From NCBI RefSeq assembly GCF_006345805.1, contig NC_043021.1:3348001-3412000 (forward strand): a stretch of 64,000 nucleotides of DNA. Reading direction: 5' to 3'. The DNA is from Octopus sinensis. Taxonomy: Eukaryota. The first letter of the stretch is position 1. Each line of letters opens with the position of its first letter. Shown here piece after piece: positions 17,401-50,518 of this stretch. The notes beneath the pieces were generated by a model. It had not been told where the DNA came from. It was given only the letters and a program-made list of their open reading frames with translations, and ran no database searches. Both the position numbers and the translations under genes were made by a program.

Positions 17401-17801
17401 GTTCCGGGTTCAGTCCCACTGCGTGGCATCTTGGGCAAGTGTCTTCTACTATAGCCTCGGGCCGACCAATGCCTTGTGAGTGGATTTGGTAGACAGAAAC
17501 TGAAAGAAGCCCGTCGTATATATATATATATATATATATAGAATGATTGTCGTCATTTCTTTCTCTTTTGCCTGCGTTGTTTGCTTTTTAAGTGCTGTGG
17601 TTTTACTGGGATCTCCCTTTTAAGTAGAAAGAATAGCCAAAACTCTTTGACTGCTATTTCTAAATTCGGTGTGTGGTGAGGCAAATCGTTGCTAAACCCT
17701 TAATTACTTAAACATTCCTTGAATGGGGCTTTTACATGCCGAACTCTACTTGGTAAAATTAATGATTATTCCAAATTAATTCATTTCACCCTTTATTATT
17801 G

Positions 17802-17833
<32 letters not shown>

Positions 17834-18035: not shown

Positions 18036-18203
18036 AAGTGTGCCTCATCAGAAATGTAGTTAAGTGTTGCTTCAACTCTCTTTTCTCCTCCGTAAAAGTT
18101 ATCCTATGTTTGCAGTACTTTGCTTCTTTGATCAGTAAACATTTCCACAGTTTTATTTCATTATTTTGCTTTTTCTATATATTTACAGTTGAAAATTTTT
18201 ACA

Positions 18204-21200
18204 ATGGAAGATGTAAAGAGGAGCAATATTGCGGAAGACAGTGGAAATTTTTCAAATTCCCTCTTATCGGTTATCAACAAGAATGCCGTAAATGATACAG
18301 GCAATGCAGCTAATTTACCAAAGATTCCTGTTATTGTGGTCTCTGACTCCAGTGACACAGAAGATTCAGTGCCAAAGCGCCATCTCAAATTCCGAATGAG
18401 AATAAACAACAGTAATGAGGCTCTGTTTGTAATTCTTCCAAAGAGCATTATTTGTCTGATATGTTATAAGAAATTCCTGCGTATCTCATCATTAAAAAGC
18501 CACATCTTGTGGCATCTTCATCGTGACGATGTTCCCAGCAATAATTTATGTCATTCTTGTAAATCTAATGCTGACATATCTGACTGTCCATCATTCAAGT
18601 TGATTAAGAAGATCATGAGAAATTTCTTATTATCAACAATAAGAAAGCGACAATCTTTGAAAAATAATTCCCGAAGCTATAGAGTTGATCCAAATTACGA
18701 CAAAGTGATGATTACAGAAAACACATTTACTATAGAAAATACGACGACAGAAACATCAAGTAACAATTCCCATTTGGATAACAATAATTCACCAACTCCT
18801 TCTAATACTGCCAATAACAATAAACCAAAAGACTTGAAAGACTACAAAGGAAACTCCATCCAAGATGATTTATTTAAAGAAAAGGCTGTAACCTCTGACC
18901 AAAAGGAACGAACAACATTTGATGAAAGTTCAGCTGTCAGCGATAAGCTTTGTGTAGAACCTGTGATAGATTCAAGCGAATTTATGCTTGTAAATGGACA
19001 ATACAAATGTTTAAGTTGTTCGAAAGATTACACTCTAAACACAATCAATAATCATATAATGTGGCATTTTCACAAAGGTGTTGACTTGTGCTCTAAGCTG
19101 CACTACATAAGTTTCAGTTCTGGTGATACAATCTGCCCATTAGTAGTTCAGATTATAAACTATTTAGTATCTAAGGAAGGAAAACCAATACAAGTGAACT
19201 GGGGTAAGAATAATGATGGGAAAATAATTTTCAAAGTGAAGTTGATGAAAACTGCAACTGAATTGAATGCAGATACAGTTGTTGATAATCCTATTAGTCT
19301 GACAAAAAAAGACAATGTACCCAGTTTTCAGAGTGATAGTGTCACTCCACCAATTGCCGAGTACACCATAAATGAACCATTGGTCCAGGACCATTCTGAT
19401 AGCAGTGACACACAAAACTCAACTTGCAACTCTAAAGCTGGCTCTAGTCATCCAACAGATAAATATTTGATAAGCGAATGTTCAAACGACACTCCTACAG
19501 TGTGTGATAAAACAGATGAAAGTTTACCTTTAGAGAATGACAACCAGCCAGTGTGTAAAGAAATGACAGAAGTAACAACAGCAGGCACTGGTGGAAATAA
19601 TTTACATGTTCAGCCAGTCAGGAAACCAGATTCTTCTGCCGATGTCTGGAGTTTTTATAAATGTATGGTAACAGGGTGCAACTATTCCACTTTATTTCCT
19701 GACAATTATTTGAAACATCTGAAACAACTACATGAAAATATGCACTTTTACCAATGCACCCATTGCGACTTTACAGCTGACACCTATAGTCTTTTAGCAA
19801 AACATCTGAAAACTCATACCCACCCAACAGAATTTCTATTTCCTTGTGGTTCCAGTAATTGTAGCTATTACACAAGGGTTCTGAGCCTGCTACCCAAACA
19901 TTTTACTTCAAGTCACATCAACTGTAAAAAAGTCCTCTGCAAGCACTGTGCTACTGAATTCACAGACCTTAGCCAGTTATTGGAACACTACCATTGTAAT
20001 CTCCTGAAGTCAGTTAAATGTTCTTACTGTCCTGCACGAGACACTCTCCGTCAACGTATCCTACACCATCTCTCTTTATCTCATCCAGGGAGGCCACGAC
20101 AAATTATTGTCAGCAGCCAGCTTGTATGCAGTACCAAGAAACAAGCATCTGGGCATGTAAAACTACCGACAGAGAGTACAGTCAAAGTTATGAAAGAGAC
20201 CCTAATATCAGAACAAGAACAAACTGCAGGTTTTAAGACAAGCTGCTTGAGTAATGACGGTACAGACGATGGAGATCATCGTGCATCTGAAAAATATGTA
20301 AATGGTTTGATAAATCCAAGAAATCATACAGAAGAACTTTGTAAGACTGGGGATTGGTCTAACGAACAGAGTGAAACTAATGGTTGTTCTAGTGAACTGG
20401 GTGGGACTAGTGATTATGCTAACGAACAGTGTAATGGTTTGAGTGATTTTAAGCAGGCACAAGAACAAAAAGGTGTTAAAATGAAGCAGTTGAGAAAACA
20501 AAAGAACAGAGTAAAGACAAAATTAAAAAATTCTTCTAAAGATATCTCATCAATAGAAGGGTTTAATTGGAGTGGTGAGAGTAATGGCAGTTGTGAACAG
20601 ACGTACAATAATACTGCCCCAGTCTCTAATTTTATTAATTTTGATATAGCTGGAAGAGAACTTGATGCTTGCTTGAAGATTTGCTACGAATTTCTGGATC
20701 AGAGTTTAAAGTGCAAGCTATGCTTCCAAACTAGAAAGTCGACCCAGGAGATTCATCTTCACATTCTACAGTATCACTTCCATTGGTATCTCTGGCAGTG
20801 TTTCAAATGTAAAACAAATACGTATTCACTTGAAGAAATGCATTGGCATTACCAGCACAAACATCGAGGCTTGATTATTTGTGTGAAATTTCTTTCCTTA
20901 CCGCAGCTGGCGAAAGGTTCTGATGGCAGACTTTGCCTTCAGAAAGAACAAAAGATTGTTTCAGAGAAATCTCAGAAATCAAAGAAGTCTGAACTGTACA
21001 GACAGATACGGCAGCATTGTGTATATGAAATGGTGAATTCAAGAAATTCTAAGAAGGAGGAAGACACGGCCAATGATAAGCAGAGAAACAAAAAACTGTT
21101 TATATTTCTAAGTGACTCTCAGCCTCTGGATGAAGCAGAGAAAATTCCAGATAACGATGAAAATACTAATAATCTTGCAAAAGGTGAACTTGACTATGAA

Positions 21201-24200
21201 AAAAATTACAAACATAAAAAATTACGCAAAAGTTCTTTAAATGATAAAAGTCACAGAGAGATAAAGAAAAGGAAGATCTCTTCACTCTTGAATGAAAGCA
21301 ACATTGCAATAGATACGTCCAACACGGATTTCAAGATGGAGAAGACTATCAAACAAGGTAATAATTATAATAGAAATGGATTACTGCTTAATGTTGAAAA
21401 ACACTTAATGGTTGCTCAAAATTCGCTTCCATTCAGGAGAGGCAAAAAGGAGAAATGCTTATTGCATCTTAGGAAAGAAACATCTTTGGTTAATTATACA
21501 ACTTGGAACCAAGCCTTTCTGACTGGGAACATAAATACATCATTTGATAATAGTTGTAAAATGAGTAGTGACCCAACTGTCAATAACAAGAAGATGAAGA
21601 TCAGCCCAGATACTGTTGAACAGAGCAAAGAGGCAACTGGCTCAGATGTTAAAATCACAATAGTGAAAGCTGACTCTGATGTTGAAATTAGTAAGGTGAA
21701 GACTGGCTCACCTGTCGATAACAGTAAAACAAGGACTGGCTCACCTGTCGATAACAGTAAAACAAAAATTGGCTCACCTGTCGATAACAGTAAAACAAGG
21801 ACTGGCTCACCTGTCGATAACAGTAAAACAAAGACTGACTCACCTGTCGATAACAGTAAAACAAAAATTGGCTCACCTGTCAATAACAGTAGAACAAGGA
21901 CTGGCTCACCTGTCGATAACAGTAAAACAAAAATTGGCTCACCTGTCGATAACAGTAGAACAAGGACTGGCTCACCTGTCGATAACAGTAAAACAAAGAC
22001 TGGCTCACCTGTCGATAACAGTAAAACAAGGAATGACTCACCTGTCGATAACATTAAAACAAGGACTGACTCACCTGTCGATAACAGTAAAACAAGGACT
22101 GACTCACCTGTCGATAACAGTAAAACAAAGACTGGCTCACCTGTCGATAACAGTAAAACAAGGACTGGTGCACCTGTCGATAACAGTAAAACAAGGACTG
22201 GCTCACCTGTCGATAACAGTAAAACAAGGTCTGGTTCACCTGTCGATAACAGTAAAACAAAGACTGGCTCACCTGTCGATAACAGTAAAACAAAGACTGG
22301 CTCACCTGTCAATAACAGTAAAATAAGGACTGACTCACCTGTCGATAACAGTAAAACAAGGACTGGCTCACCTGTCGATAACAGTAAAACAAGGACTGAC
22401 TCACCTGTCGATAACATTAAAACAAGGACTGACTCACCTGTCGATAACAGTGAAACAAAGACTGGCTCACCTGTCGATAACAGTAAAACAAGGACTGGTG
22501 CACCTGTCGATAACAGTAAAACAAGGACTGGCTCACCTGTCGATAACAGTAAAACAAGGTCTGGTTCACCTGTCGATAACAGTAAAACAAAGACTGGCTC
22601 ACCTGTCGATAACAGTAAAACAAAGACTGGCTCACCTGTCAATAACAGTAAAACAAGGACTGACTCACCTGTCGATAACAGTAAAACAAGGACTGGCTCA
22701 CCTGTCGATAACAGTAAAACAAGGACTGACTCACCTGTCGATAACAGTAAAACAAGAACTGACTCACTTGTCGATAACATTAAAACAAGGACTGACTCAC
22801 CTGTCGATAACATTAAAACAAGGACTGACTCACCTGTCGATAACATTAAAACAAGGACTGACTCACCTGTCGATAACAGTAAAACAAGGACTGACTCACC
22901 TGTCGATAACAGTAAAACAAAGACTGGCTCACCTGTCGATAACAGTAAAACAAGGACTGGTGCACCTGTCGATAACAGTAAAACAAGGACTGGCTCACCT
23001 GTCGATAACAGTAAAACAAGGTCTTGTTCACCTGTCGATAACAGTAAAACAAAGACTGGCTCACCTGTTGATAACACTAAAACATGGACTGACTCACCTG
23101 TCGATAACACTAAAACATGGACTGACTCACCTGTCGATAACACTAAAACAAGGTCTGGCTCACATGTTGATAACAGTAAAACAAGGTCTGGTTCACCTGT
23201 CAATAACAGTAAAACAAGGACTGACTCACCTGTCGATAACAGTAAAACAAGGACTGGCTCACCTGTCGATAGCAGTAAAACAAGGACTGGCTCACCTGTC
23301 CATAACAGTAAAACAAGGTCTGGTTCACCTGTCCATAACAGTAAAACAAAGACTGGCTCACCTGTCGATAACACTATAACAAGGACTGGCTCACATGTTG
23401 ATAACAGTAAAACAAGGACTGGCTCACCTGTTGATAACACTAAAACAAGGACTGGCTTACCTGTCGATAACAGTAAAACAAAGACTGGCTCACCTGTCGA
23501 TAACACTAAAACAAGGACTGGCTCACCTGTCGATAACACTAAAACAAAGACTAACTTACCTGTCGATAACAGTAAAACAAGGTCTGGTTCACATGTTGAT
23601 AACAGTAAAACAAGGTCTGGTTCACATGTTGATAACAGTAAAACAAGGTCTGGTTCACATGTTGATAACAGTAAAACAAGGTCTGGCTCACCTGTCGATA
23701 ACAGTAAAACAAAGACTGGCTCACCTGTCGATAACACTAAAACAAAGACTAACTTACCTGTCGATAACAGTAAAACAAGGTCTGGTTCACATGTTGATAA
23801 CAGTAAAACAAGGTCTGGCTCACCTGTCGATAACAGTAAAACAAGGACTGGCTCACCTGTCGATAACAGTAAAACAAGGACTGTCTCACCTGTTGATAAC
23901 AGTAAAACAAAGACTGGCTCACCCATCGATAACAGTAAAACAAAGACTGGCTCGCCTGCTGATAGTAATAAAGTGAAGATTGGCTCAGTTGCTGATAGCA
24001 ACAACACAAAGACTAGCTCAACTGTTGAGCGTAATAAGGTGAAGACTGACTCAGCTGTTGATAGCAGTAAAGCGAAGGCTAACTTGGCTGTTGATAGCAG
24101 TAAAGTGAAGACTGGCTCAGCTGTTGATAGTAAAGCGAAGACTGGCTCAGCTGTTGATAGTAAAGCAAAGACTGGCTCAGCTGTTGATAGTAAAGCAAAG

Positions 24201-26585
24201 ACTAGCTCAGCTGTTGATAGTAAAGCGAAGACTGGCTCAGCTGTTGATAGTAAAGCAAAGACTGGCTCAGCTGTTGATAGTAAAGCAAAGACTGGCTCAG
24301 CTGTTGACAGCAGTAAAGTAAAGACTGGCTCAGATGTTGATAGTAAAGCAAAGACTGGCTCAGCTGTTGATGGTAAAGCAAAGACTGGCTCAGCTGTTGA
24401 TAGTAAAGCAAAGACTGGCTCAGCTGTTGATAGTAAAGCGAAGACTGGCTCGGCTGTTGATAGTAAAGCAAAGACTGGCTCAGCTGTTGATAGTAAAGCA
24501 AAGACTGGCTCAGCTGTTGACAGCAGTAAAGTAAAGACTGGCTCAGCTGTTGATAGTAAAGCAAAGACTGGCTCAGCTGTTGATAGTAAAGCAAAGACTG
24601 GCTCAGCTGTTGACAGCAGTAAAGTAAAGACTGGCTCAGCTGTTGATAGTAAAGCAAAGACTGGCTCAGCTGTTGATAGTAAAGCAAAAAGTGGCTCAGC
24701 TGTTGATAGTAAAGCAAAAAATGGCTCAGCTGTTGATAGCAGTAAAGCAAAGACTGGCTCAGCTGTTGATAGTAAAGTGAAGACTGGCTCAGCTGTTGAT
24801 AGCAGTAAAACAAGGACTGGCTCGGCTGTTGACAGCAGTAAAGTAAAGACTGGCTCAGATGTTGATAGCAATAAGTTGAAAACCAGTTCAGATGCTGAAG
24901 TCAGTAAGGAGACAACTGACTCTAAAATCACTAAGGTGAAGACTGAATTAGCTGTTGGTATCAGTATGGTGGAAAATGGTTCTGATGTTGAAATTAGTGA
25001 GGTGAAAAGTAGCTTAGATATTGACATCAATAAAATGAAAGCTCACTCAGATGTTTTTATCAGTAGAATGAAAACAGAAGGTGGTTTGGGTATTCGGGTC
25101 AGTAAGGTAAAGACCAACTCAGATGCTGAAACCATCAGCAAGATGGAAACTAGTTCAACTGTCAGTTGTCATAAGGTGAAGACTGATCCAACTATCAGTA
25201 GCAAAAAGGTGAAGATTGACTCAACTGTTGAAGCCAGTAAGGTGAAGAAGGAACCGAGTGTTGGTAACGGGAAACAATCCACAGTCAAAAATGCCTATAA
25301 AAGACATTTGTCAAGTGAAGTTACATCTAATGAGAAAAAAGTCCGTGTAAATTGTAGTACTGACAGTCAAGACAGAAAGAATAGATCAAGCCCCGATGAC
25401 TGTCATCGGATAAAGAATGCTGTATATTTTGATATTTCCAGCAAGAAAGATTTGTCGTCTACCAACATTTCTTGTGGGAAAACTATCACAACAAAATCTA
25501 ACAGTTCATTTAAATATGTTGATAGTTCTGTTACTCTTAATAAGAACAAAAACGCAACAAATGTCAGCAACTCTAGTAAGAAAATACTCAGCACCTCCAC
25601 TTCCAGTGTAGTATTCTCTAAAGCTGATAGTTCCAGTAAAAAGATTCTATCTGGTGCTCACACTTCTGATGTAAAATCTTCATCTAAAGCCAACACATCC
25701 AATAAAGAGTTTTTGTCAAATGCTGACATGTCCAGGAACAAGATTTTATCTAAAGCTGACACATCCAGTAAAAAGGACTTATCTAGAGCTGGCACATCTA
25801 ATAAAAAGACTTCATCTAAAGCCGACACTCACAGCAACAAGACTTCATCTAAAGCCGACACTCACAGCAACAAGATTTCATCTAAAGCCGACACTCACGG
25901 CAACAAGACTTCATCTAAAGCCGACACTCACAGCAACAAGACTTCATCTAAAGCCGACACTCACGGCAACAAGACTTCATCTAAAGCCGACACTCACGGC
26001 AATAAGACTTTATCTAAATCCGATATGTCCACAAAGAAAACTTCATTGATAGTTGACACTTCCCGGAAAAAGACTTTATCTGATGCCAACATATCGATTA
26101 AGCCCGTACAAAATAATACTAACATTTCTAATAAGAAGACTTTGACAAATGCAAATGTTTCACAGAAGGAAAGAGCTGATACTACTGCCACTTCATTTAC
26201 TGGGGTGGTTCATCGAAGTGTTTCTGCCTCCAAGAGAGGCTCGGATGCTGTTAGAAAACCCAGTTCTAAAAAATGTAAGTTTTGTGAATTCACATCATTG
26301 AAAAGCTTTCAACTGATTAGGCACATGACTGTGAAACATGCCAAACAATACAAAGACTTCATTACAGAAAGAGAAATAAGAATTATAAAAGATGCAATTG
26401 TCAAGAACTCGAGAAAGGAGTATGTTTGTCCATTTTGCAAGCATTGTTGCAGCATTCGCACGGATTGTAAATTACACATATATCACAAGCATTTGCATTT
26501 AAAAACTCTGAAGTGCAGCCAGTGCATGTTTTTTACAAGGTTACCATTTCAGCTCGAACAACACCTTTCATTCCATTTGAAATAA
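18204..26585 (+). CDS. Large C2H2 zinc-finger protein (~2,793 aa, ~12 atypical fingers in N-terminal, central and C-terminal groups) with a giant S/T/K/D-rich tandem-repeat region; single coding exon
   Basis: Uninterrupted 8.4-kb ORF. Splice acceptor ttacag ends at 18188 and is followed by ACA-ATG-G at 18204. Fingers include CLICYKKFLRISSLKSHILWH, CTHCDFTADTYSLLAKHLKTH, CKFCEFTSLKSFQLIRHMTVKH, CSQCMFFTRLPFQLEQHLSFH. No TGEKP linkers. The frame is open back to the acceptor, so an upstream phase-0 coding exon cannot be excluded. Confidence 0.92.
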   Translation: MEDVKRSNIAEDSGNFSNSLLSVINKNAVNDTGNAANLPKIPVIVVSDSSDTEDSVPKRHLKFRMRINNSNEALFVILPKSIICLICYKKFLRISSLKSHILWHLHRDDVPSNNLCHSCKSNADISDCPSFKLIKKIMRNFLLSTIRKRQSLKNNSRSYRVDPNYDKVMITENTFTIENTTTETSSNNSHLDNNNSPTPSNTANNNKPKDLKDYKGNSIQDDLFKEKAVTSDQKERTTFDESSAVSDKLCVEPVIDSSEFMLVNGQYKCLSCSKDYTLNTINNHIMWHFHKGVDLCSKLHYISFSSGDTICPLVVQIINYLVSKEGKPIQVNWGKNNDGKIIFKVKLMKTATELNADTVVDNPISLTKKDNVPSFQSDSVTPPIAEYTINEPLVQDHSDSSDTQNSTCNSKAGSSHPTDKYLISECSNDTPTVCDKTDESLPLENDNQPVCKEMTEVTTAGTGGNNLHVQPVRKPDSSADVWSFYKCMVTGCNYSTLFPDNYLKHLKQLHENMHFYQCTHCDFTADTYSLLAKHLKTHTHPTEFLFPCGSSNCSYYTRVLSLLPKHFTSSHINCKKVLCKHCATEFTDLSQLLEHYHCNLLKSVKCSYCPARDTLRQRILHHLSLSHPGRPRQIIVSSQLVCSTKKQASGHVKLPTESTVKVMKETLISEQEQTAGFKTSCLSNDGTDDGDHRASEKYVNGLINPRNHTEELCKTGDWSNEQSETNGCSSELGGTSDYANEQCNGLSDFKQAQEQKGVKMKQLRKQKNRVKTKLKNSSKDISSIEGFNWSGESNGSCEQTYNNTAPVSNFINFDIAGRELDACLKICYEFLDQSLKCKLCFQTRKSTQEIHLHILQYHFHWYLWQCFKCKTNTYSLEEMHWHYQHKHRGLIICVKFLSLPQLAKGSDGRLCLQKEQKIVSEKSQKSKKSELYRQIRQHCVYEMVNSRNSKKEEDTANDKQRNKKLFIFLSDSQPLDEAEKIPDNDENTNNLAKGELDYEKNYKHKKLRKSSLNDKSHREIKKRKISSLLNESNIAIDTSNTDFKMEKTIKQGNNYNRNGLLLNVEKHLMVAQNSLPFRRGKKEKCLLHLRKETSLVNYTTWNQAFLTGNINTSFDNSCKMSSDPTVNNKKMKISPDTVEQSKEATGSDVKITIVKADSDVEISKVKTGSPVDNSKTRTGSPVDNSKTKIGSPVDNSKTRTGSPVDNSKTKTDSPVDNSKTKIGSPVNNSRTRTGSPVDNSKTKIGSPVDNSRTRTGSPVDNSKTKTGSPVDNSKTRNDSPVDNIKTRTDSPVDNSKTRTDSPVDNSKTKTGSPVDNSKTRTGAPVDNSKTRTGSPVDNSKTRSGSPVDNSKTKTGSPVDNSKTKTGSPVNNSKIRTDSPVDNSKTRTGSPVDNSKTRTDSPVDNIKTRTDSPVDNSETKTGSPVDNSKTRTGAPVDNSKTRTGSPVDNSKTRSGSPVDNSKTKTGSPVDNSKTKTGSPVNNSKTRTDSPVDNSKTRTGSPVDNSKTRTDSPVDNSKTRTDSLVDNIKTRTDSPVDNIKTRTDSPVDNIKTRTDSPVDNSKTRTDSPVDNSKTKTGSPVDNSKTRTGAPVDNSKTRTGSPVDNSKTRSCSPVDNSKTKTGSPVDNTKTWTDSPVDNTKTWTDSPVDNTKTRSGSHVDNSKTRSGSPVNNSKTRTDSPVDNSKTRTGSPVDSSKTRTGSPVHNSKTRSGSPVHNSKTKTGSPVDNTITRTGSHVDNSKTRTGSPVDNTKTRTGLPVDNSKTKTGSPVDNTKTRTGSPVDNTKTKTNLPVDNSKTRSGSHVDNSKTRSGSHVDNSKTRSGSHVDNSKTRSGSPVDNSKTKTGSPVDNTKTKTNLPVDNSKTRSGSHVDNSKTRSGSPVDNSKTRTGSPVDNSKTRTVSPVDNSKTKTGSPIDNSKTKTGSPADSNKVKIGSVADSNNTKTSSTVERNKVKTDSAVDSSKAKANLAVDSSKVKTGSAVDSKAKTGSAVDSKAKTGSAVDSKAKTSSAVDSKAKTGSAVDSKAKTGSAVDSKAKTGSAVDSSKVKTGSDVDSKAKTGSAVDGKAKTGSAVDSKAKTGSAVDSKAKTGSAVDSKAKTGSAVDSKAKTGSAVDSSKVKTGSAVDSKAKTGSAVDSKAKTGSAVDSSKVKTGSAVDSKAKTGSAVDSKAKSGSAVDSKAKNGSAVDSSKAKTGSAVDSKVKTGSAVDSSKTRTGSAVDSSKVKTGSDVDSNKLKTSSDAEVSKETTDSKITKVKTELAVGISMVENGSDVEISEVKSSLDIDINKMKAHSDVFISRMKTEGGLGIRVSKVKTNSDAETISKMETSSTVSCHKVKTDPTISSKKVKIDSTVEASKVKKEPSVGNGKQSTVKNAYKRHLSSEVTSNEKKVRVNCSTDSQDRKNRSSPDDCHRIKNAVYFDISSKKDLSSTNISCGKTITTKSNSSFKYVDSSVTLNKNKNATNVSNSSKKILSTSTSSVVFSKADSSSKKILSGAHTSDVKSSSKANTSNKEFLSNADMSRNKILSKADTSSKKDLSRAGTSNKKTSSKADTHSNKTSSKADTHSNKISSKADTHGNKTSSKADTHSNKTSSKADTHGNKTSSKADTHGNKTLSKSDMSTKKTSLIVDTSRKKTLSDANISIKPVQNNTNISNKKTLTNANVSQKERADTTATSFTGVVHRSVSASKRGSDAVRKPSSKKCKFCEFTSLKSFQLIRHMTVKHAKQYKDFITEREIRIIKDAIVKNSRKEYVCPFCKHCCSIRTDCKLHIYHKHLHLKTLKCSQCMFFTRLPFQLEQHLSFHLK
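21702..23945 (+). repeat. Coding minisatellite: 68 x 33-bp unit (ACTGGCTCACCTGTCGATAACAGTAAAACAAGG; peptide TGSPVDNSKTR)
   Basis: First unit at 21702, next array type begins at 23946; 2244 bp / 33 = 68 units in register. Confidence 0.95.
24111..24875 (+). repeat. Coding minisatellite: ~25 units of 30 bp (TGSAVDSKAK) mixed with 33-bp variants (TGSAVDSSKVK)
   Basis: 24111-24848 = 738 bp = 18 x 30 + 6 x 33, plus a final degenerate unit. Confidence 0.9.
25800..26020 (+). repeat. Coding minisatellite: ~6 x 33 bp (KADTHSNKTSS) with degenerate 11-aa flanking units
   Basis: AAAGCCGACACTCACAGCAACAAGACTTCATCT repeated in tandem. Confidence 0.9.
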
Positions 26586-41454: not shown

Positions 41455-43281
41455 ATGGGTCAACTGGCAAACCATTATCAGGTAGGGCCTTCACAGAAAC
41501 TTACTGCTGCAATTGGCAAACGTAAGGACTCTAAAGCATGTGGAGGAAGAACTGTGAATCCATTTATAGTGAAAGCTCTTATTTCCAAAATGGAACGTCA
41601 AGGAAAAATTGAACAGTATACATTAAAGAAACGAATAAATAATAATAGTTTGAGTCTGGAGAAAAGATATACAGAACTTTTCCCAAAACTACCAGAATAT
41701 AAGGATATGACAACTGAAAGACAGAAGCCTTTTAGTAAAACACTTTTCAAACGATTAGCACAAGTGTTAGTGGCTTTTTATCATCTTCTTCATAAAAAAA
41801 AAGTAACCAAAGTGTCCTTTTCCGAGATGCCATTTCCACGCAAACTGACAAGAGAATTTTCCATGCAACTATTTGAAAAGAAAAAGCCTCGTTCTATAGA
41901 AAGTGAAATACATGATGCTCAGAATCAGTGGCATGCAGCAATGAATATTGCAGCTCTTATGGCCAAGATGAGAGGAGACACACTGCTTACAGAAAGTGTA
42001 GCATCAACTACTGAAGATCTCTCTTTCAATCCTGGGTTTTTCAAAGTAGATAGAGAGACAACAATACTAAGCGAAGAAGCTCAAAATATTCTGAGACGCA
42101 TTCCAGAGAGAAGAACTCCTGAAGATGTAAAAATAGTTATCAACTGTCTTCAGAATGCTGGCCTTGCCTGTTTCTGCAACTACCCAGATGAAATTCAGAA
42201 GATGATTGCCAAAATAGCAGGCTATATGGTGGTGACACCTAAACGTGTAATCATTCGGCAAGGAATACGTGCTGAACACTTCTACTTCATTATTGGAGGT
42301 CGAGTGATGCTCTCAGAGAAAGATTATAAAATAGATGGGACAGAAACAGAAAAGACAACATTCTTACAGCCAGGTTCAAGTTTTGGAGAACAAGATATGG
42401 TAAACCACACACTTCGAAGATTTAGTGCTATCAGTGTCAACACAGTTCAGTTACTCACCATTGAACGGGAAGATATGCTAATGGAGTTCACAACTTATAA
42501 AGTTGACAAACAAGTACCAGACCATATTAAATTCCTTGCACATTGTAAATTTTTGCAATTCTGGCCAGTCGAGCGTTTAAGAAACAATTTGGAGCACTGT
42601 TTTGTATATTTTTTTAAAAGAGATGAATTGGTACTTGAAGATAGTCACAATACAGATTGGATTTATATAATGAAAAAGGGTATATGTAAGGTCGTCAAAA
42701 GATTAAAAAAACCACAAACACAACGTGTTAATATTGCCAATAATAGACTGAAATTCGTCTCAAATCCCAATTTTGAACAAATATTTAAATTACCACTAAA
42801 AAAAGCATATACAAATGCCAGGGTTTTAGATAACATAGAAGTTATTGATCCATTTGCAGACGATGGAGAGTTTTCTAAAATAGTTTCAAGCATTCCTTCA
42901 ACTGATAGATTATGCAACAAAACGAAGCAGGTAAATAACGATAACAATTATGTAAATGTGCAAATTGATTTGCTTAAATGTAGAGATGTTTTTGGTCTGG
43001 ACACATTGGTTTTTGATGAATATTACATACTTCCAGCCACTGATAGTGTTAGCCTAGTCAGTGGTGGGGCAGAAATAGTGTTGCTGTCAAAGAAATTCTT
43101 CATAAAAAATGCTTCTGAACTAGTGAAATGGCAGGTACGCAAACAAGCAAATAGCTATCCTAGTAACAATGACCTTGTTGTCAAACTAGAAAGTCAACAA
43201 ATGTGGAATGATTATAAAAAGAGTGTAATGTCAGAACTAGTGAGTGGAAAATTAAAACAAAGACCAAAAAGATGGAAATAA
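41455..43281 (+). CDS. Cyclic-nucleotide-binding-domain protein (CNBD1/CNBD2-like), 608 aa, copy 1; single coding exon
   Basis: ACC-ATG-G start with an in-frame TGA just upstream; acceptor tttcacag ends at 41386. CNB domain VIIRQG..HFYFIIGGRV..FGEQDMVNHTLRRFSA keeps canonical FGE-x8-R spacing. Second degenerate CNB domain (WIYIMKKG..VFGLD). AATAAA at 43503. Confidence 0.88.
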   Translation: MGQLANHYQVGPSQKLTAAIGKRKDSKACGGRTVNPFIVKALISKMERQGKIEQYTLKKRINNNSLSLEKRYTELFPKLPEYKDMTTERQKPFSKTLFKRLAQVLVAFYHLLHKKKVTKVSFSEMPFPRKLTREFSMQLFEKKKPRSIESEIHDAQNQWHAAMNIAALMAKMRGDTLLTESVASTTEDLSFNPGFFKVDRETTILSEEAQNILRRIPERRTPEDVKIVINCLQNAGLACFCNYPDEIQKMIAKIAGYMVVTPKRVIIRQGIRAEHFYFIIGGRVMLSEKDYKIDGTETEKTTFLQPGSSFGEQDMVNHTLRRFSAISVNTVQLLTIEREDMLMEFTTYKVDKQVPDHIKFLAHCKFLQFWPVERLRNNLEHCFVYFFKRDELVLEDSHNTDWIYIMKKGICKVVKRLKKPQTQRVNIANNRLKFVSNPNFEQIFKLPLKKAYTNARVLDNIEVIDPFADDGEFSKIVSSIPSTDRLCNKTKQVNNDNNYVNVQIDLLKCRDVFGLDTLVFDEYYILPATDSVSLVSGGAEIVLLSKKFFIKNASELVKWQVRKQANSYPSNNDLVVKLESQQMWNDYKKSVMSELVSGKLKQRPKRWK

Positions 43282-44437: not shown

Positions 44438-46252
44438 ATGGGTCAACTGACAAACAATTATGAGTTAGGGCCTTCACAGAAACTTATTGCTGCACTTGGC
44501 AAACAAGAGGACAGTATGGAATGTGTAGGAACAACTGTGAATCCATTTATAGTGAAAGCTCTTATTTCGAAAATGGAACGTCAAGGAAAAATTGAACAGT
44601 ATACATTAAAGAAACGAATAAATAATAATAGTTTGAGTCTGAAGAAAAGATATACAGAACTTTTCCCAAAACTACCAGAATATAAGGATATGACAACTAA
44701 AAGAGAGAAGCCTTTTAGTAAAACGCTTTTCAAACGATTAGCACAAGTGTTAGTGGCTTTTTATTGTCTTTTTCATAAAAAAAAAGTAACCAAAGGGTCC
44801 TTTCCTGAGATGCCATTTCTACGCAAACAGAAAGGAGAAAGTTCCACACTACTATTTGAAAAGAGAAGGGTTCGGTCAGATGAAGGTGAAATACACGATG
44901 CTCAGAATCAGTGGCATGCAGCAATGAATATTGCAGCACTTATGGAAAAGATTAAAGGAGACACACTGTTTACAGAAAGTGTAGGATCAACTACTGAAGA
45001 TCTCTCTTTCAATCCTAGTTTTTTCAAAGTAGATAGAGAGACAACAATACTAAGCGAAGAAGCTCAAAATATTCTGAGACACATTCCAGAGAGAAGAACT
45101 CCTGAAGATGTAAAAATAGTTATCAACTGTCTTCAGAATGCTGGCCTTGCCTGTTTCTGCAACTACCCAGATGAAATTCAGAAGATGATTGCCAAAATAG
45201 CAGGCTATATGGTGGTGACACCTAAACGTGTAATCATTCGGCAAGGAATACGTGCTGAACACTTCTACTTCATTATTGGAGGTCGAGTGATGCTCTCAGA
45301 GAAAGATTATAAAATAGATGGGACAGAAACAGAAAAGACAACGATCTTACAGCCAGGGACAAGTTTTGGAGAACAAGATATGGTAAACCACACACTTCGA
45401 AGATTTAGTGCTATCAGTGTCAACACAGTTCAGTTACTCACCGTTGAACGGGAAGATATGCTAAGGGGATTCATAAGTTATAAAGTTGACAAACAAGTAC
45501 CAAACCATATTAAATTCCTTGCACATTGTAAATTTTTGCAATTCTGGCCAGTCGACCATTTAGGAAACAATTTGGAGCACTGTTTTGTATATTTTTTTAA
45601 AAGAGATGTAGTGGTACTTGAAGACAGTCACAATACAGATTGGATTTATATAATGAAAAAGGGTATATGTAGGGTCGTCAAAAGATTAAAAAAACCACAA
45701 ACACAACGTGTTAATATTGCCAATAATAGACTGAAATTCTTCACAAATACCAATTCTGAACAAAACTTTAAATTACCACTGAGAAAATCATATACAAATG
45801 CCAGGGTTTTACATAGCATAGATGTTGCAGACAGTGTGGTTTTTCCTAAAATAGCTTCAAGCATTCCTTCAACTGATAGATTATGCAACAAAACGAAGCA
45901 GGTATATAACGATAACAATTATGTAAATGTGCAAATTGATTTGCTTAAACGTAGAGATGTTTTTGGTCTGGACACATTGGTTTTCGACGAATATTTCATA
46001 CTTCCAGCCACTGATAGTGTTAGCCTAGTCAGTGGTGGGGCAGAAATAGTGTTGCTGTCAAAGAAATTCTTCATAAAACATGCTTCTGAACTAGTGAAAT
46101 GGCAGGTACGCAAACAAGCAAATAGCTATCCTAATAAAACTGACCTTGACGTCAAACTGGAAAGTCAACAAATGTGGAATGATTATAAAAAGAGTGTAAT
46201 GTCAGAACTAGTGAGTGGGAAAAAAAAACAAAGACCAAAAAGATGGAAATAA
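44438..46252 (+). CDS. Cyclic-nucleotide-binding-domain protein (CNBD1/CNBD2-like), 604 aa, copy 2; tandem paralog
   Basis: Same architecture as copy 1; acceptor ends at 44369; AATAAA at 46447; intact ORF. Confidence 0.88.
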   Translation: MGQLTNNYELGPSQKLIAALGKQEDSMECVGTTVNPFIVKALISKMERQGKIEQYTLKKRINNNSLSLKKRYTELFPKLPEYKDMTTKREKPFSKTLFKRLAQVLVAFYCLFHKKKVTKGSFPEMPFLRKQKGESSTLLFEKRRVRSDEGEIHDAQNQWHAAMNIAALMEKIKGDTLFTESVGSTTEDLSFNPSFFKVDRETTILSEEAQNILRHIPERRTPEDVKIVINCLQNAGLACFCNYPDEIQKMIAKIAGYMVVTPKRVIIRQGIRAEHFYFIIGGRVMLSEKDYKIDGTETEKTTILQPGTSFGEQDMVNHTLRRFSAISVNTVQLLTVEREDMLRGFISYKVDKQVPNHIKFLAHCKFLQFWPVDHLGNNLEHCFVYFFKRDVVVLEDSHNTDWIYIMKKGICRVVKRLKKPQTQRVNIANNRLKFFTNTNSEQNFKLPLRKSYTNARVLHSIDVADSVVFPKIASSIPSTDRLCNKTKQVYNDNNYVNVQIDLLKRRDVFGLDTLVFDEYFILPATDSVSLVSGGAEIVLLSKKFFIKHASELVKWQVRKQANSYPNKTDLDVKLESQQMWNDYKKSVMSELVSGKKKQRPKRWK

Positions 46253-49848: not shown

Positions 49849-50400
49849 CTAAGATGGATATTGCCAAACATCTGTTGATATCTGCTCAGTCTGAATCACT
49901 TTGTTCACCCGCTTTAATTTAAAATTACGACACAGACTCAGTATTTGAATCTTCAGTTCATATTTGTCCGACTCATTTTTTATCTGCCTCAACTCTTCCC
50001 CTACAATTTTGCCAAACATTTCATCGACGTCGACCTGGACAGACGATGGCGTGGGATCTTTGAACTCATTAAATATATCGTCGCACGTGTTGAGAACTTG
50101 TACGCTACGAGTTTCAATGTGGTTGGCTGACTTGGACTTTTTGGGTTTGTCACTGTTCGTCGGTGACAGCGACCGCTTAATGAAGAGTGTGTGTGGCATT
50201 AACGAAAAGTCATCAATGTTTGGGTTCGGTTGTGCTTCATGCGTAAGACGTGGTGAGTCCTGACTCACATTGGAAGCATCTCCATTCCAACAGTCAGAAT
50301 CTCTGTTTTGGAGGTAGCTGTGTTCATCAGGCCAGCTGGTGACAGATTCATCCATTTCTCCTTGGTCCAAAGGATTCACAACATGTGCCGGAATATTCGC
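49849..50400 (-). CDS. MADF protein gene A, exon 3 (acidic linker and BESS-like C-terminal motif); full product 305 aa
   Basis: Acceptor cattccag, phase 0 matching exon 2; DEMFGKIVGEELRQIKNESDKYELKIQILSLC resembles the BESS-like tail of MADF proteins; TAG at 49849-49851. Confidence 0.8.
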   Translation of the reverse strand, partial: ANIPAHVVNPLDQGEMDESVTSWPDEHSYLQNRDSDCWNGDASNVSQDSPRLTHEAQPNPNIDDFSLMPHTLFIKRSLSPTNSDKPKKSKSANHIETRSVQVLNTCDDIFNEFKDPTPSSVQVDVDEMFGKIVGEELRQIKNESDKYELKIQILSLCRNFKLKRVNKVIQTEQISTDVWQYPS

Positions 50401-50518
50401 CTGGAATGTTAAAAACAAGAGAATATAAGAGTCAGTAAGGTGAAGACTGGGGAGGAGAAAAATGACAAAACTCAGACCTTTGTCACAGGCAATGCCTTGT
50501 CATCTTCGGCTTCATCAT

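Follow-up and report, generated by a model that had tools for sequence, protein, structure and literature searches.

An octopus zinc-finger gene with a very long repetitive spacer, probably an in-frame coding-minisatellite expansion of an ancestral linker

This report concerns one gene in a 64,000-nucleotide stretch of the Octopus sinensis genome (NCBI RefSeq assembly GCF_006345805.1, contig NC_043021.1, positions 3,348,001 to 3,412,000), which is referred to as the window. All positions are those of the window, and the features of the gene are all on the + strand. The gene, LOC115224209, would encode a protein of 2,793 amino acids (aa) in which two blocks of C2H2-like zinc fingers are separated by a spacer of ~1,780 aa that is rich in Ser, Thr, Lys and Asp. 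We consider it probable that this spacer arose by a lineage-specific, in-frame expansion of a coding minisatellite in an ancestral disordered linker, the protein itself being a divergent member of a lophotrochozoan C2H2 family that has yet to be characterised. The gene itself, its family and collinearity, the expansion of the linker, the lack of constraint on single residues of the array and the stronger conservation of domains than of linkers are demonstrated below; that the array is largely tolerated, and not selected for a motif, is what we infer from them. An earlier, sequence-only reading of this DNA had described a ~1,200-residue repetitive spacer. About 1,200 aa are indeed visibly repetitive, but the whole spacer is longer and contains three arrays, B and C besides A.

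The uninterrupted open reading frame (ORF) spans 18189..26585; the complete coding sequence runs from the first ATG at 18204 to the stop at 26585 (18204..26585, 2,793 aa plus stop). In this AT-rich window a stop should turn up about once every 15 codons. Two stretches are open far beyond chance: 1,166 non-repetitive codons in the N-terminal part and 567 codons that follow array B (natural logarithm of the probability of no stop, ln P, ~-78 and ~-38, respectively, both calculated with the base composition of the window). The ATG lies in a good Kozak context (acaATGg). A whole-protein search recovered the RefSeq model 'uncharacterized protein LOC115224209 isoform X3 [Octopus sinensis]' (P0180), which begins at the same Met and is identical to the window ORF over 1,949 residues (aa 1-1720 and 1930-2158). 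By this identity, the locus is LOC115224209 of O. sinensis, which is already in RefSeq as an unnamed, large zinc-finger protein; a literature search for LOC115224209 found no paper that mentions it. A polypyrimidine tract plus CAG, read from the sequence as similar to a 3' splice acceptor (ttttgctttttctatatatttacag / ttgaaaatttttacaATGg, 18160..18189), ends 15 nt before the ATG, and therefore the coding part is one exon, probably with a preceding non-coding exon. The description of the gene as a single 8.4-kb exon is thus correct for the coding part and not for the whole transcript, which likely has a 5' non-coding exon.

Fingers were located by scanning the ORF translation for the pattern C-x2-4-C...H-x3-5-H. 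Nine C2H2-like fingers precede the spacer (aa 84, 269, 487, 518, 548, 579, 606, 837 and 866) and three follow it (aa 2691, 2742/2749 and 2771), exactly the nine and three that had been estimated before; the classical ligand pattern (C-x2-4-C-x12-H-x3-5-H) is present at 12 sites. The first finger, C84, is isolated and has conserved flanks (HILWHLH, LC..C and CP; module 1, aa 70-160, 18411..18683); module 1 is 93% identical to the probable ortholog in Octopus bimaculoides described below. Module 2 (aa 255-352, 18966..19259, alignment A1) is an extended finger domain in which the C2H2 finger C269 is accompanied by a strand, helices and a beta-hairpin. It is 95% identical to the O. bimaculoides ortholog and is modelled by AlphaFold2 (AF2) with a predicted local distance difference test score (pLDDT) of 79 and a predicted template modelling score (pTM) of 0.66; a Foldseek search of its fold against the PDB found no counterpart (best E 0.7). 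The N-terminal fingers are part of a conserved module of ~95 aa, built around a C2H2 finger with H-I-x-W-H-x-H that follows a strand and is followed by LC…CP helices and a beta-hairpin; the module is present in two copies in the window protein and four in its paralog P0003. It could represent an extended-finger domain that has yet to be described. Dimerising single C2H2 fingers with neighbouring beta-strands have been reported (2026 NAR, PMC12774644).

The central cluster (aa 476-647, 19629..20144) consists of five tandem fingers (C487, C518, C548, C579 and C606) followed by a PRQIIVSSQ motif. The interfinger spacing is the canonical seven residues, with the linkers ENMHFYQ, PTEFLFP, INCKKVL and NLLKSVK. 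Alignment A2 has 21 invariant columns: F14 and Y15 at the N-terminal end, 18 Cys/His ligand columns and a C-terminal Cys, C172. Eighteen of the 20 ligand columns of the cluster are therefore invariant and one more (H40, the second His of finger 1) is nearly so. A family profile built from 13 members of the five-finger cluster matches CTCF (1.7e-18) and TFIIIA (1.1e-17), and phmmer with the window protein against the PDB gave CTCF and HIC2 at 7e-06. With the window protein alone, every C2H2 match in Pfam falls under its gathering score (best 20.8 bits vs 25.2), and no Pfam family at all attains its gathering score. Judged by the family profile, the central cluster is a genuine tandem C2H2 array of the DNA-binding type, and the earlier assignment as a zinc-finger protein is borne out. 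The remaining fingers before the spacer form a pair, C837 and C866 (aa 815-900, 20646..20903), collinear with P0003, P0002, P0004 and P0005. The C-terminal block of three C2H2-like fingers (C2691, C2742/2749 and C2771; 26274..26582, from pattern and paralog alignment) is identical to P0003 at 41 of 106 residues and to P0004 at 41 of 103, and has a weak PDB match to CTCF (E 0.004). Presumably the protein is nuclear and binds DNA.

A complete HMMER search of 1.84 billion representative proteins, for which aa 1-1160 served as the query, gave 301 matches, 68 of them with E below 1e-10. The best match, P0001, has 1,222 aa and is 86% identical over all 1,160 residues; its UniParc number adjoins those of O. 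bimaculoides entries, and it is the probable ortholog in that species. Between the two species identity is 91-95% in the domains and finger blocks and 76-83% in the linkers, as is expected where purifying selection acts on the domains. P0002 to P0004 match with E values of 1e-56 to 1e-44. Relatives occur in cephalopods (Octopus, Argonauta and Sepia), in bivalves and gastropods (Mytilus, Saccostrea, Argopecten, Pinctada, Haliotis, Pomacea and Mya), in the brachiopod Lingula and in the nemertean Lineus; they are very large proteins (1,700-4,700 aa), all uncharacterised, one of which has been automatically named 'REST-like'. Examples with names include P0003 (O. bimaculoides LOC106882551, XP_052832689.1), P0002 (Argonauta hians Ahia01_001087600), and P0005 and P0164 (O. 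vulgaris / O. sinensis 'serine-rich adhesin for platelets-like' / LOC115224503).

Local alignments place five collinear blocks in the window protein, P0003, P0002, P0004, P0005 and P0006. In order, these are the N-terminal single-finger modules, the five-finger cluster ending in KPRQI(V/I)V(S/T)SQ, the finger pair, the linker and the three C-terminal fingers. The window protein shares with its relatives this order of blocks, the large size and the absence of a characterised member. It differs from them in having two N-terminal modules, not four, in having the most divergent central cluster, a property it shares with the O. bimaculoides ortholog (these two are 31-36% identical to the others, vs 40-56% among the others), and in having a linker that consists of tandem arrays and is 10-30 times as long. 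By these alignments, the protein is a fast-evolving, octopus-lineage paralog in an uncharacterised lophotrochozoan family of large C2H2 proteins. In O. sinensis, the gene and its paralog LOC115224503 are on the same 28.9-Mb scaffold, and in Argonauta hians the two paralog types (P0002/P0016) have the consecutive locus tags Ahia01_001087500 and 001087600. This arrangement suggests an old tandem duplication behind the two paralog types.

Between the finger pair and the C-terminal fingers lie 60 aa in P0003, 137 aa in P0004, 163 aa in P0005 and 182 aa in P0006, and ~1,780 aa in the window protein. Since the linker of the relatives is not only short (60-182 aa) but already rich in Lys and Ser, the octopus gene has inflated an ancestral linker 10- to 30-fold, mostly by tandem duplication. 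The O. bimaculoides ortholog enters the array in the same frame and stops five units in, with units TGSP[LV][DH]NSKTK. The start of the array is thus common to both species, and on this evidence the expansion had begun before O. sinensis and O. bimaculoides split. The units are also species-typical, with an alternating His6 in O. bimaculoides and an alternating K/R11 in O. sinensis, a pattern typical of concerted evolution.

The spacer begins with a non-repetitive segment rich in Lys, Ser and Asn (aa 901-1140, 20904..21623, from the translation) that contains a KKRK motif resembling a nuclear localisation signal and is the segment least conserved with the ortholog (76% identity). Degenerate, old repeat units (…GSDVKITIVKADSDVEISKVK; 21624..21701, the same segment being present in P0001) run into array A, which has 69 phased units of 33 bp (21702..23978, from Tandem Repeats Finder (TRF) and codon phasing) with the consensus ACTGGCTCACCTGTCGATAACAGTAAAACAAGG, or TGSPVDNSKTR. 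The sequence-only reading had counted 68 units of TGSPVDNSKTR, most of them with an S-P site; S-P is indeed present in 56 of the 69 units, but the units are variants of the consensus and only 11 are exactly TGSPVDNSKTR. Sixty-eight units of array A match a 27-nt core with three or fewer mismatches, and this core occurs 69 times in the 64-kb window, always within this ORF (0 expected by chance in both cases). Two transitional units lead to array B (23979..24881 including these units, by codon phasing; array B itself is aa 1948-2226), where ~27 units of 30 or 33 bp encode the 10/11-mers TGSAVDSKAK and TGSAVDSSKVK (TGSAVDS(S)K[AV]K), all without S-P. Further degenerate old units lie 3' of array B (…SDVEISEVK…, with KVKTD/KVKTE/KVKID/VKKE; 24882..25223, from the translation). 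Array C (aa ~2494-2614, 25678..26081, from TRF and motif positions) holds ~10 copies of the 33-bp unit (K)TSSKADTH[SG]NK between degenerate flanks. TRF itself reports two arrays of period 33, one at 21699-24857 (97.4 copies, 90% matches) and the other at 25678-26081.

Array A also has a higher-order structure. A block of 10 units recurs (units 14-23, ~24-33 and ~38-41), corresponding to 330-bp duplications. The region therefore has the properties of a coding minisatellite, or variable number of tandem repeats (VNTR): head-to-tail units of 10-100 bp, high identity between them and higher-order duplications. In units 1-10 of array A (21702-22100), the last residue alternates almost regularly between R and K (AGG vs AAA/AAG), which suggests a 66-bp dimer as an earlier duplicating unit. 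Degenerate copies of the ~11-residue unit (…SDVEISKVK…) are found on both flanks of arrays A and B; their position indicates an old repeat region whose centre was re-expanded and homogenised recently.

Several other identities for the repeat were considered and rejected. A genomic satellite captured by an exon does not fit a unit that is found, in the 64-kb window, only within this ORF. Amphipathic 11-mer helices of the apolipoprotein type (also those of alpha-synuclein and LEA proteins) are out because the Pfam Apolipoprotein match reaches 53 bits vs a cut-off of 90, each unit contains Gly and Pro, FWYILM residues make up only 2%, and AF2 predicts no helix. An array of SUMO sites was also dismissed: psi-K-x-[DE] occurs eight times in the spacer (aa 901-2680) and 0 times within arrays A and B, and examples such as VKTD, VKTE, VKID and VKKE sit in the degenerate flanks of the translation. 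Long ORFs overlie the array in other frames, for example 21494-25030 on the minus strand (1,178 aa, LLLSTGEPV…) and + strand frames at 21769-23976 (ITVKQGLAHLS…). These are by-products of the repeat and are no evidence for further genes.

The earlier reading had taken the fact that every length change in the arrays is a multiple of three as an argument for selection on the protein. The observation is true, but the argument is circular, because with units of 33 and 30 nt such changes are automatic and provide no independent evidence. Nor does openness within array A prove anything, as several frames are open there, including the 1,178-aa ORF on the minus strand. The absence of stops is likewise rejected as evidence of selection: three of 99 possible substitutions make a stop, ~1 would be expected in 33 events, and the 0 seen is not significantly different. 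Relative to the consensus, the differences in the array A units number 30 synonymous (7 distinct events, 8.0 sites) and 106 non-synonymous (26 distinct events, 25.0 sites). The ratio of non-synonymous to synonymous differences per site (pN/pS) is ~1.1 in the true frame, and the three frames are indistinguishable. Array A thus shows no purifying selection and lacks constraint at the level of residues. Array B, with three synonymous and five non-synonymous distinct events, has too few for judging selection. The C-terminal fingers share their frame with the last N-terminal finger block 5.4 kb upstream of them, and because these paralog-conserved fingers can only be reached in that frame, they provide indirect evidence that the array is read through in frame.

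The explanation that we favour would therefore run as follows. A linker of ~60-182 aa would have been inflated to ~1,780 aa by repeated tandem duplication of a unit of ~11 codons, presumably via slippage or unequal exchange. This would have left old degenerate copies at the edges, the young, homogenised arrays A (33 bp) and B (30/33 bp) in the centre, and a separate 33-bp array C beyond them. Because the units are multiples of three, a change in copy number never breaks the frame, and therefore the array could drift in length and sequence while the protein retained both finger blocks. The spacer would then act as a disordered, weakly basic tether between two zinc-finger modules. Its composition agrees with the disordered, extended linker proposed earlier, since FWYILM residues make up 7% of it vs 23% of the N-terminal part and its net charge is +130; an AF2 model of the array from a single sequence gave a pLDDT of 39, no confident fold and no helix.

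Several considerations weigh against this explanation. The start of the array has persisted since the split from O. bimaculoides, which would be compatible with some function. The pN/pS value is a crude measure where units evolve in concert, and the counts behind it are small and not independent of each other. The prediction of an intrinsically disordered, basic tether comes from composition and single-sequence AF2, both weak indicators. Finally, RefSeq isoform X3 is frame-shifted in array B and lacks the C-terminal fingers, so that a truncated product is possible.

Isoform X3 differs from the window ORF only within the arrays, and its differences bear on an alternative that we regard as somewhat unlikely, though worth keeping in mind: the length and sequence of the array may be partly an artefact of assembly, or one allele of a length-polymorphic VNTR, and the typical spacer would then be different, possibly much shorter. 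A segment of 627 nt, exactly 19 units (aa 1721-1929, 23364..23990, from alignment of the protein with the ORF), has no counterpart in isoform X3. The three compatible placements of the junction give TG..GT, GT..TT and TC..TG, never GT..AG, so that the gap resembles what a shorter allele, or a collapsed transcript placed on a longer reference, would leave, and not an intron; an artefact of the model would be compatible as well. The units are, furthermore, 90% identical with 330-bp higher-order duplications, a type of sequence prone to mis-assembly, and the older O. bimaculoides model includes no more than the first five units. On the other side, the units carry many phased diagnostic variants and are not identical copies, which favours a real sequence resolved by long reads; both flanks of the array are in one frame, and X3 retains 50 units of array A and most of array B. 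This alternative is, in any case, compatible with a minisatellite expansion of the linker.

The proposal of the sequence-only reading, that the spacer is a selected, phosphorylation-tunable linker in which S-P sites serve proline-directed kinases and switch the charge or extension of a tether between DNA-binding modules, seems to us improbable. It draws on the S-P sites in 56 of the 69 array A units, on the TGSP that is likewise found in the O. bimaculoides units, on a net charge of +1 or 0 for each unit, so that one phosphate per unit would presumably invert it, and on the analogy with the KSP repeats of the neurofilament-H (NF-H) tail (PMC11626179, PMC11151108). However, there are 56 S-P sites in array A, 0 in array B and two elsewhere in the spacer, and S-P is absent from array C and the degenerate ancestral units. 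Substitution of P or S (P to H, P to L, or S to A/L) is tolerated in the 13 array A units without S-P. An array of CDK ([ST]P.[KR]) or MAPK (P.[ST]P) consensus sites was rejected, as neither occurs anywhere in the spacer. The pN/pS of ~1.1 between array A units and the automatic nature of the frame argument for 3n units also speak against selection. As for a KSP-like class of the NF-H type, an S/T-P in most units holds for array A (56/69), and conservation of S/T-P across the repeat region, or an extended kinase consensus, fails (0 in array B). A disordered basic tether whose charge can be inverted is plausible, but nothing in the letters specifically favours regulation by phosphorylation.

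A broader version, in which the arrays form a selected, switchable polyelectrolyte tether unique to octopods, with multi-site phosphorylation of Ser (S-P in array A and S-x-x-D/E throughout), strikes us as very doubtful. The context S-x-V-[DE]-x-S-K, which includes S-x-x-D/E, is common to arrays A and B and the degenerate flanking units, with 57 sites in A and 26 in B. S-x-x-D/E resembles the minimal CK2 motif, and a Pro at +1 disfavours CK2. If true, ~100 units would flip from net positive to net negative and control the separation or multivalency of the two zinc-finger modules on chromatin, much like a neurofilament or Ki-67-type 'brush' on a sequence-specific DNA-binding protein.

That cryptic splice sites in the arrays truncate the main product to the N-terminal fingers and part of the array, the full ORF being rarely translated, is the least credible alternative and one we hardly expect: X3 does have a canonical GT..AG gap of 61 nt in array B (24679..24739, from alignment of the protein with the ORF) that shifts its frame to …TVKQRLAQLLIVK and a stop 13 codons later, with loss of the C-terminal fingers from the model, and every array A unit contains ACA/GTAAAA and several AG dinucleotides, but a 61-nt gap in a tandem repeat is a typical artefact of split-read alignment, the same frame stays open for the 567 codons that follow array B (ln P ~-38), which encode paralog-conserved fingers that would be unexpected if untranslated, and the label 'X3' implies further isoforms.

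Some other features of the window can be mentioned. Upstream of the gene are (AT)n/(TA)n microsatellites at ~17520-17540 and ~17802-17831, and between 17400 and 18000 there are stretches that may represent an interspersed repeat like the short interspersed nuclear elements common in octopus genomes. Two tandem, intron-less ORFs on the + strand (41455-43281 and 44438-46252; 608 and 604 aa) are 87% identical, each with one cyclic-nucleotide-binding domain (Pfam PF00027, E ~1e-13); by sequence, the pair looks like a recent tandem duplication of a single-exon gene. A 189-aa ORF on the minus strand (49849-50418) has no Pfam match.

As it stands, the locus opens no long-standing question, and it is an unusual but explainable variant in which nothing so far marks the repeat as functionally special. 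If the array is fully translated, it would nevertheless be an extreme natural inflation of a linker between two DNA-binding modules, ~20-fold within its family, and it could be used to ask how long a disordered tether a chromatin protein with many zinc fingers can bear or put to use. The case also draws attention to a whole lophotrochozoan C2H2 family none of whose members is characterised and whose extended finger module lacks a counterpart among solved structures. The locus is likely to be error-prone for gene models and assemblies, and its length polymorphism may be large.

How does this protein compare with known systems? ZNF462/ZFP462 is a large vertebrate protein whose C2H2 fingers are dispersed and which targets heterochromatin (bioRxiv 10.1101/2021.06.28.449463), and the window protein is likewise large, its C2H2 fingers being atypical and far apart. 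Individual fingers of family members match ZNF462-specific Pfam models (best E 4.2e-08), whereas the window protein scores 19.5-19.8 bits against these models vs a cut-off of 27 (E ~7e-04). As the match is limited to single fingers, a ZNF462-like relationship of the family is best treated as a lead. The expansion of TGEKP-linked zinc fingers in cephalopods (PMC12513265) shares with the window protein the C2H2 type, a cephalopod genome and, in the five-finger cluster, the seven-residue spacing. The window protein lacks TGEKP, has one short tandem cluster, and its other fingers are isolated or paired. The contrast drawn earlier with TGEKP-linked arrays is therefore upheld by the four linkers of the cluster and by its limit of five fingers in tandem. 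Because the family predates cephalopods, with members in molluscs, a brachiopod and a nemertean, it is not part of that lineage-specific burst.

For the spacer, the likenesses are of another kind. The repeat exons of SON and Ki-67 are coding minisatellites in multi-kilobase single exons of nuclear scaffold proteins and encode disordered, charged regions. They resemble the octopus gene in having in-frame tandem units in a large exon and differ from it in unit length, sequence and protein family; no homology is implied. The NF-H tail is a long, disordered, Lys/Ser-rich tandem array with S-P in most units that behaves as a phosphorylation-regulated polyelectrolyte 'brush' (PMC11626179, PMC11151108), and the window spacer is also a long, Lys/Ser-rich tandem array that is predicted to be disordered. 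NF-H, however, is cytoskeletal, its K-S-P context is conserved and its phosphorylation has been shown, whereas S-P in the window protein is in the context G-S-P-V-D, occurs in one of three arrays and is known from sequence alone. By analogy, the closest mechanistic counterparts of the spacer would be the KSP tail of NF-H and the large repeat exons of nuclear scaffold proteins, while actual membership is confined to the unnamed lophotrochozoan family.

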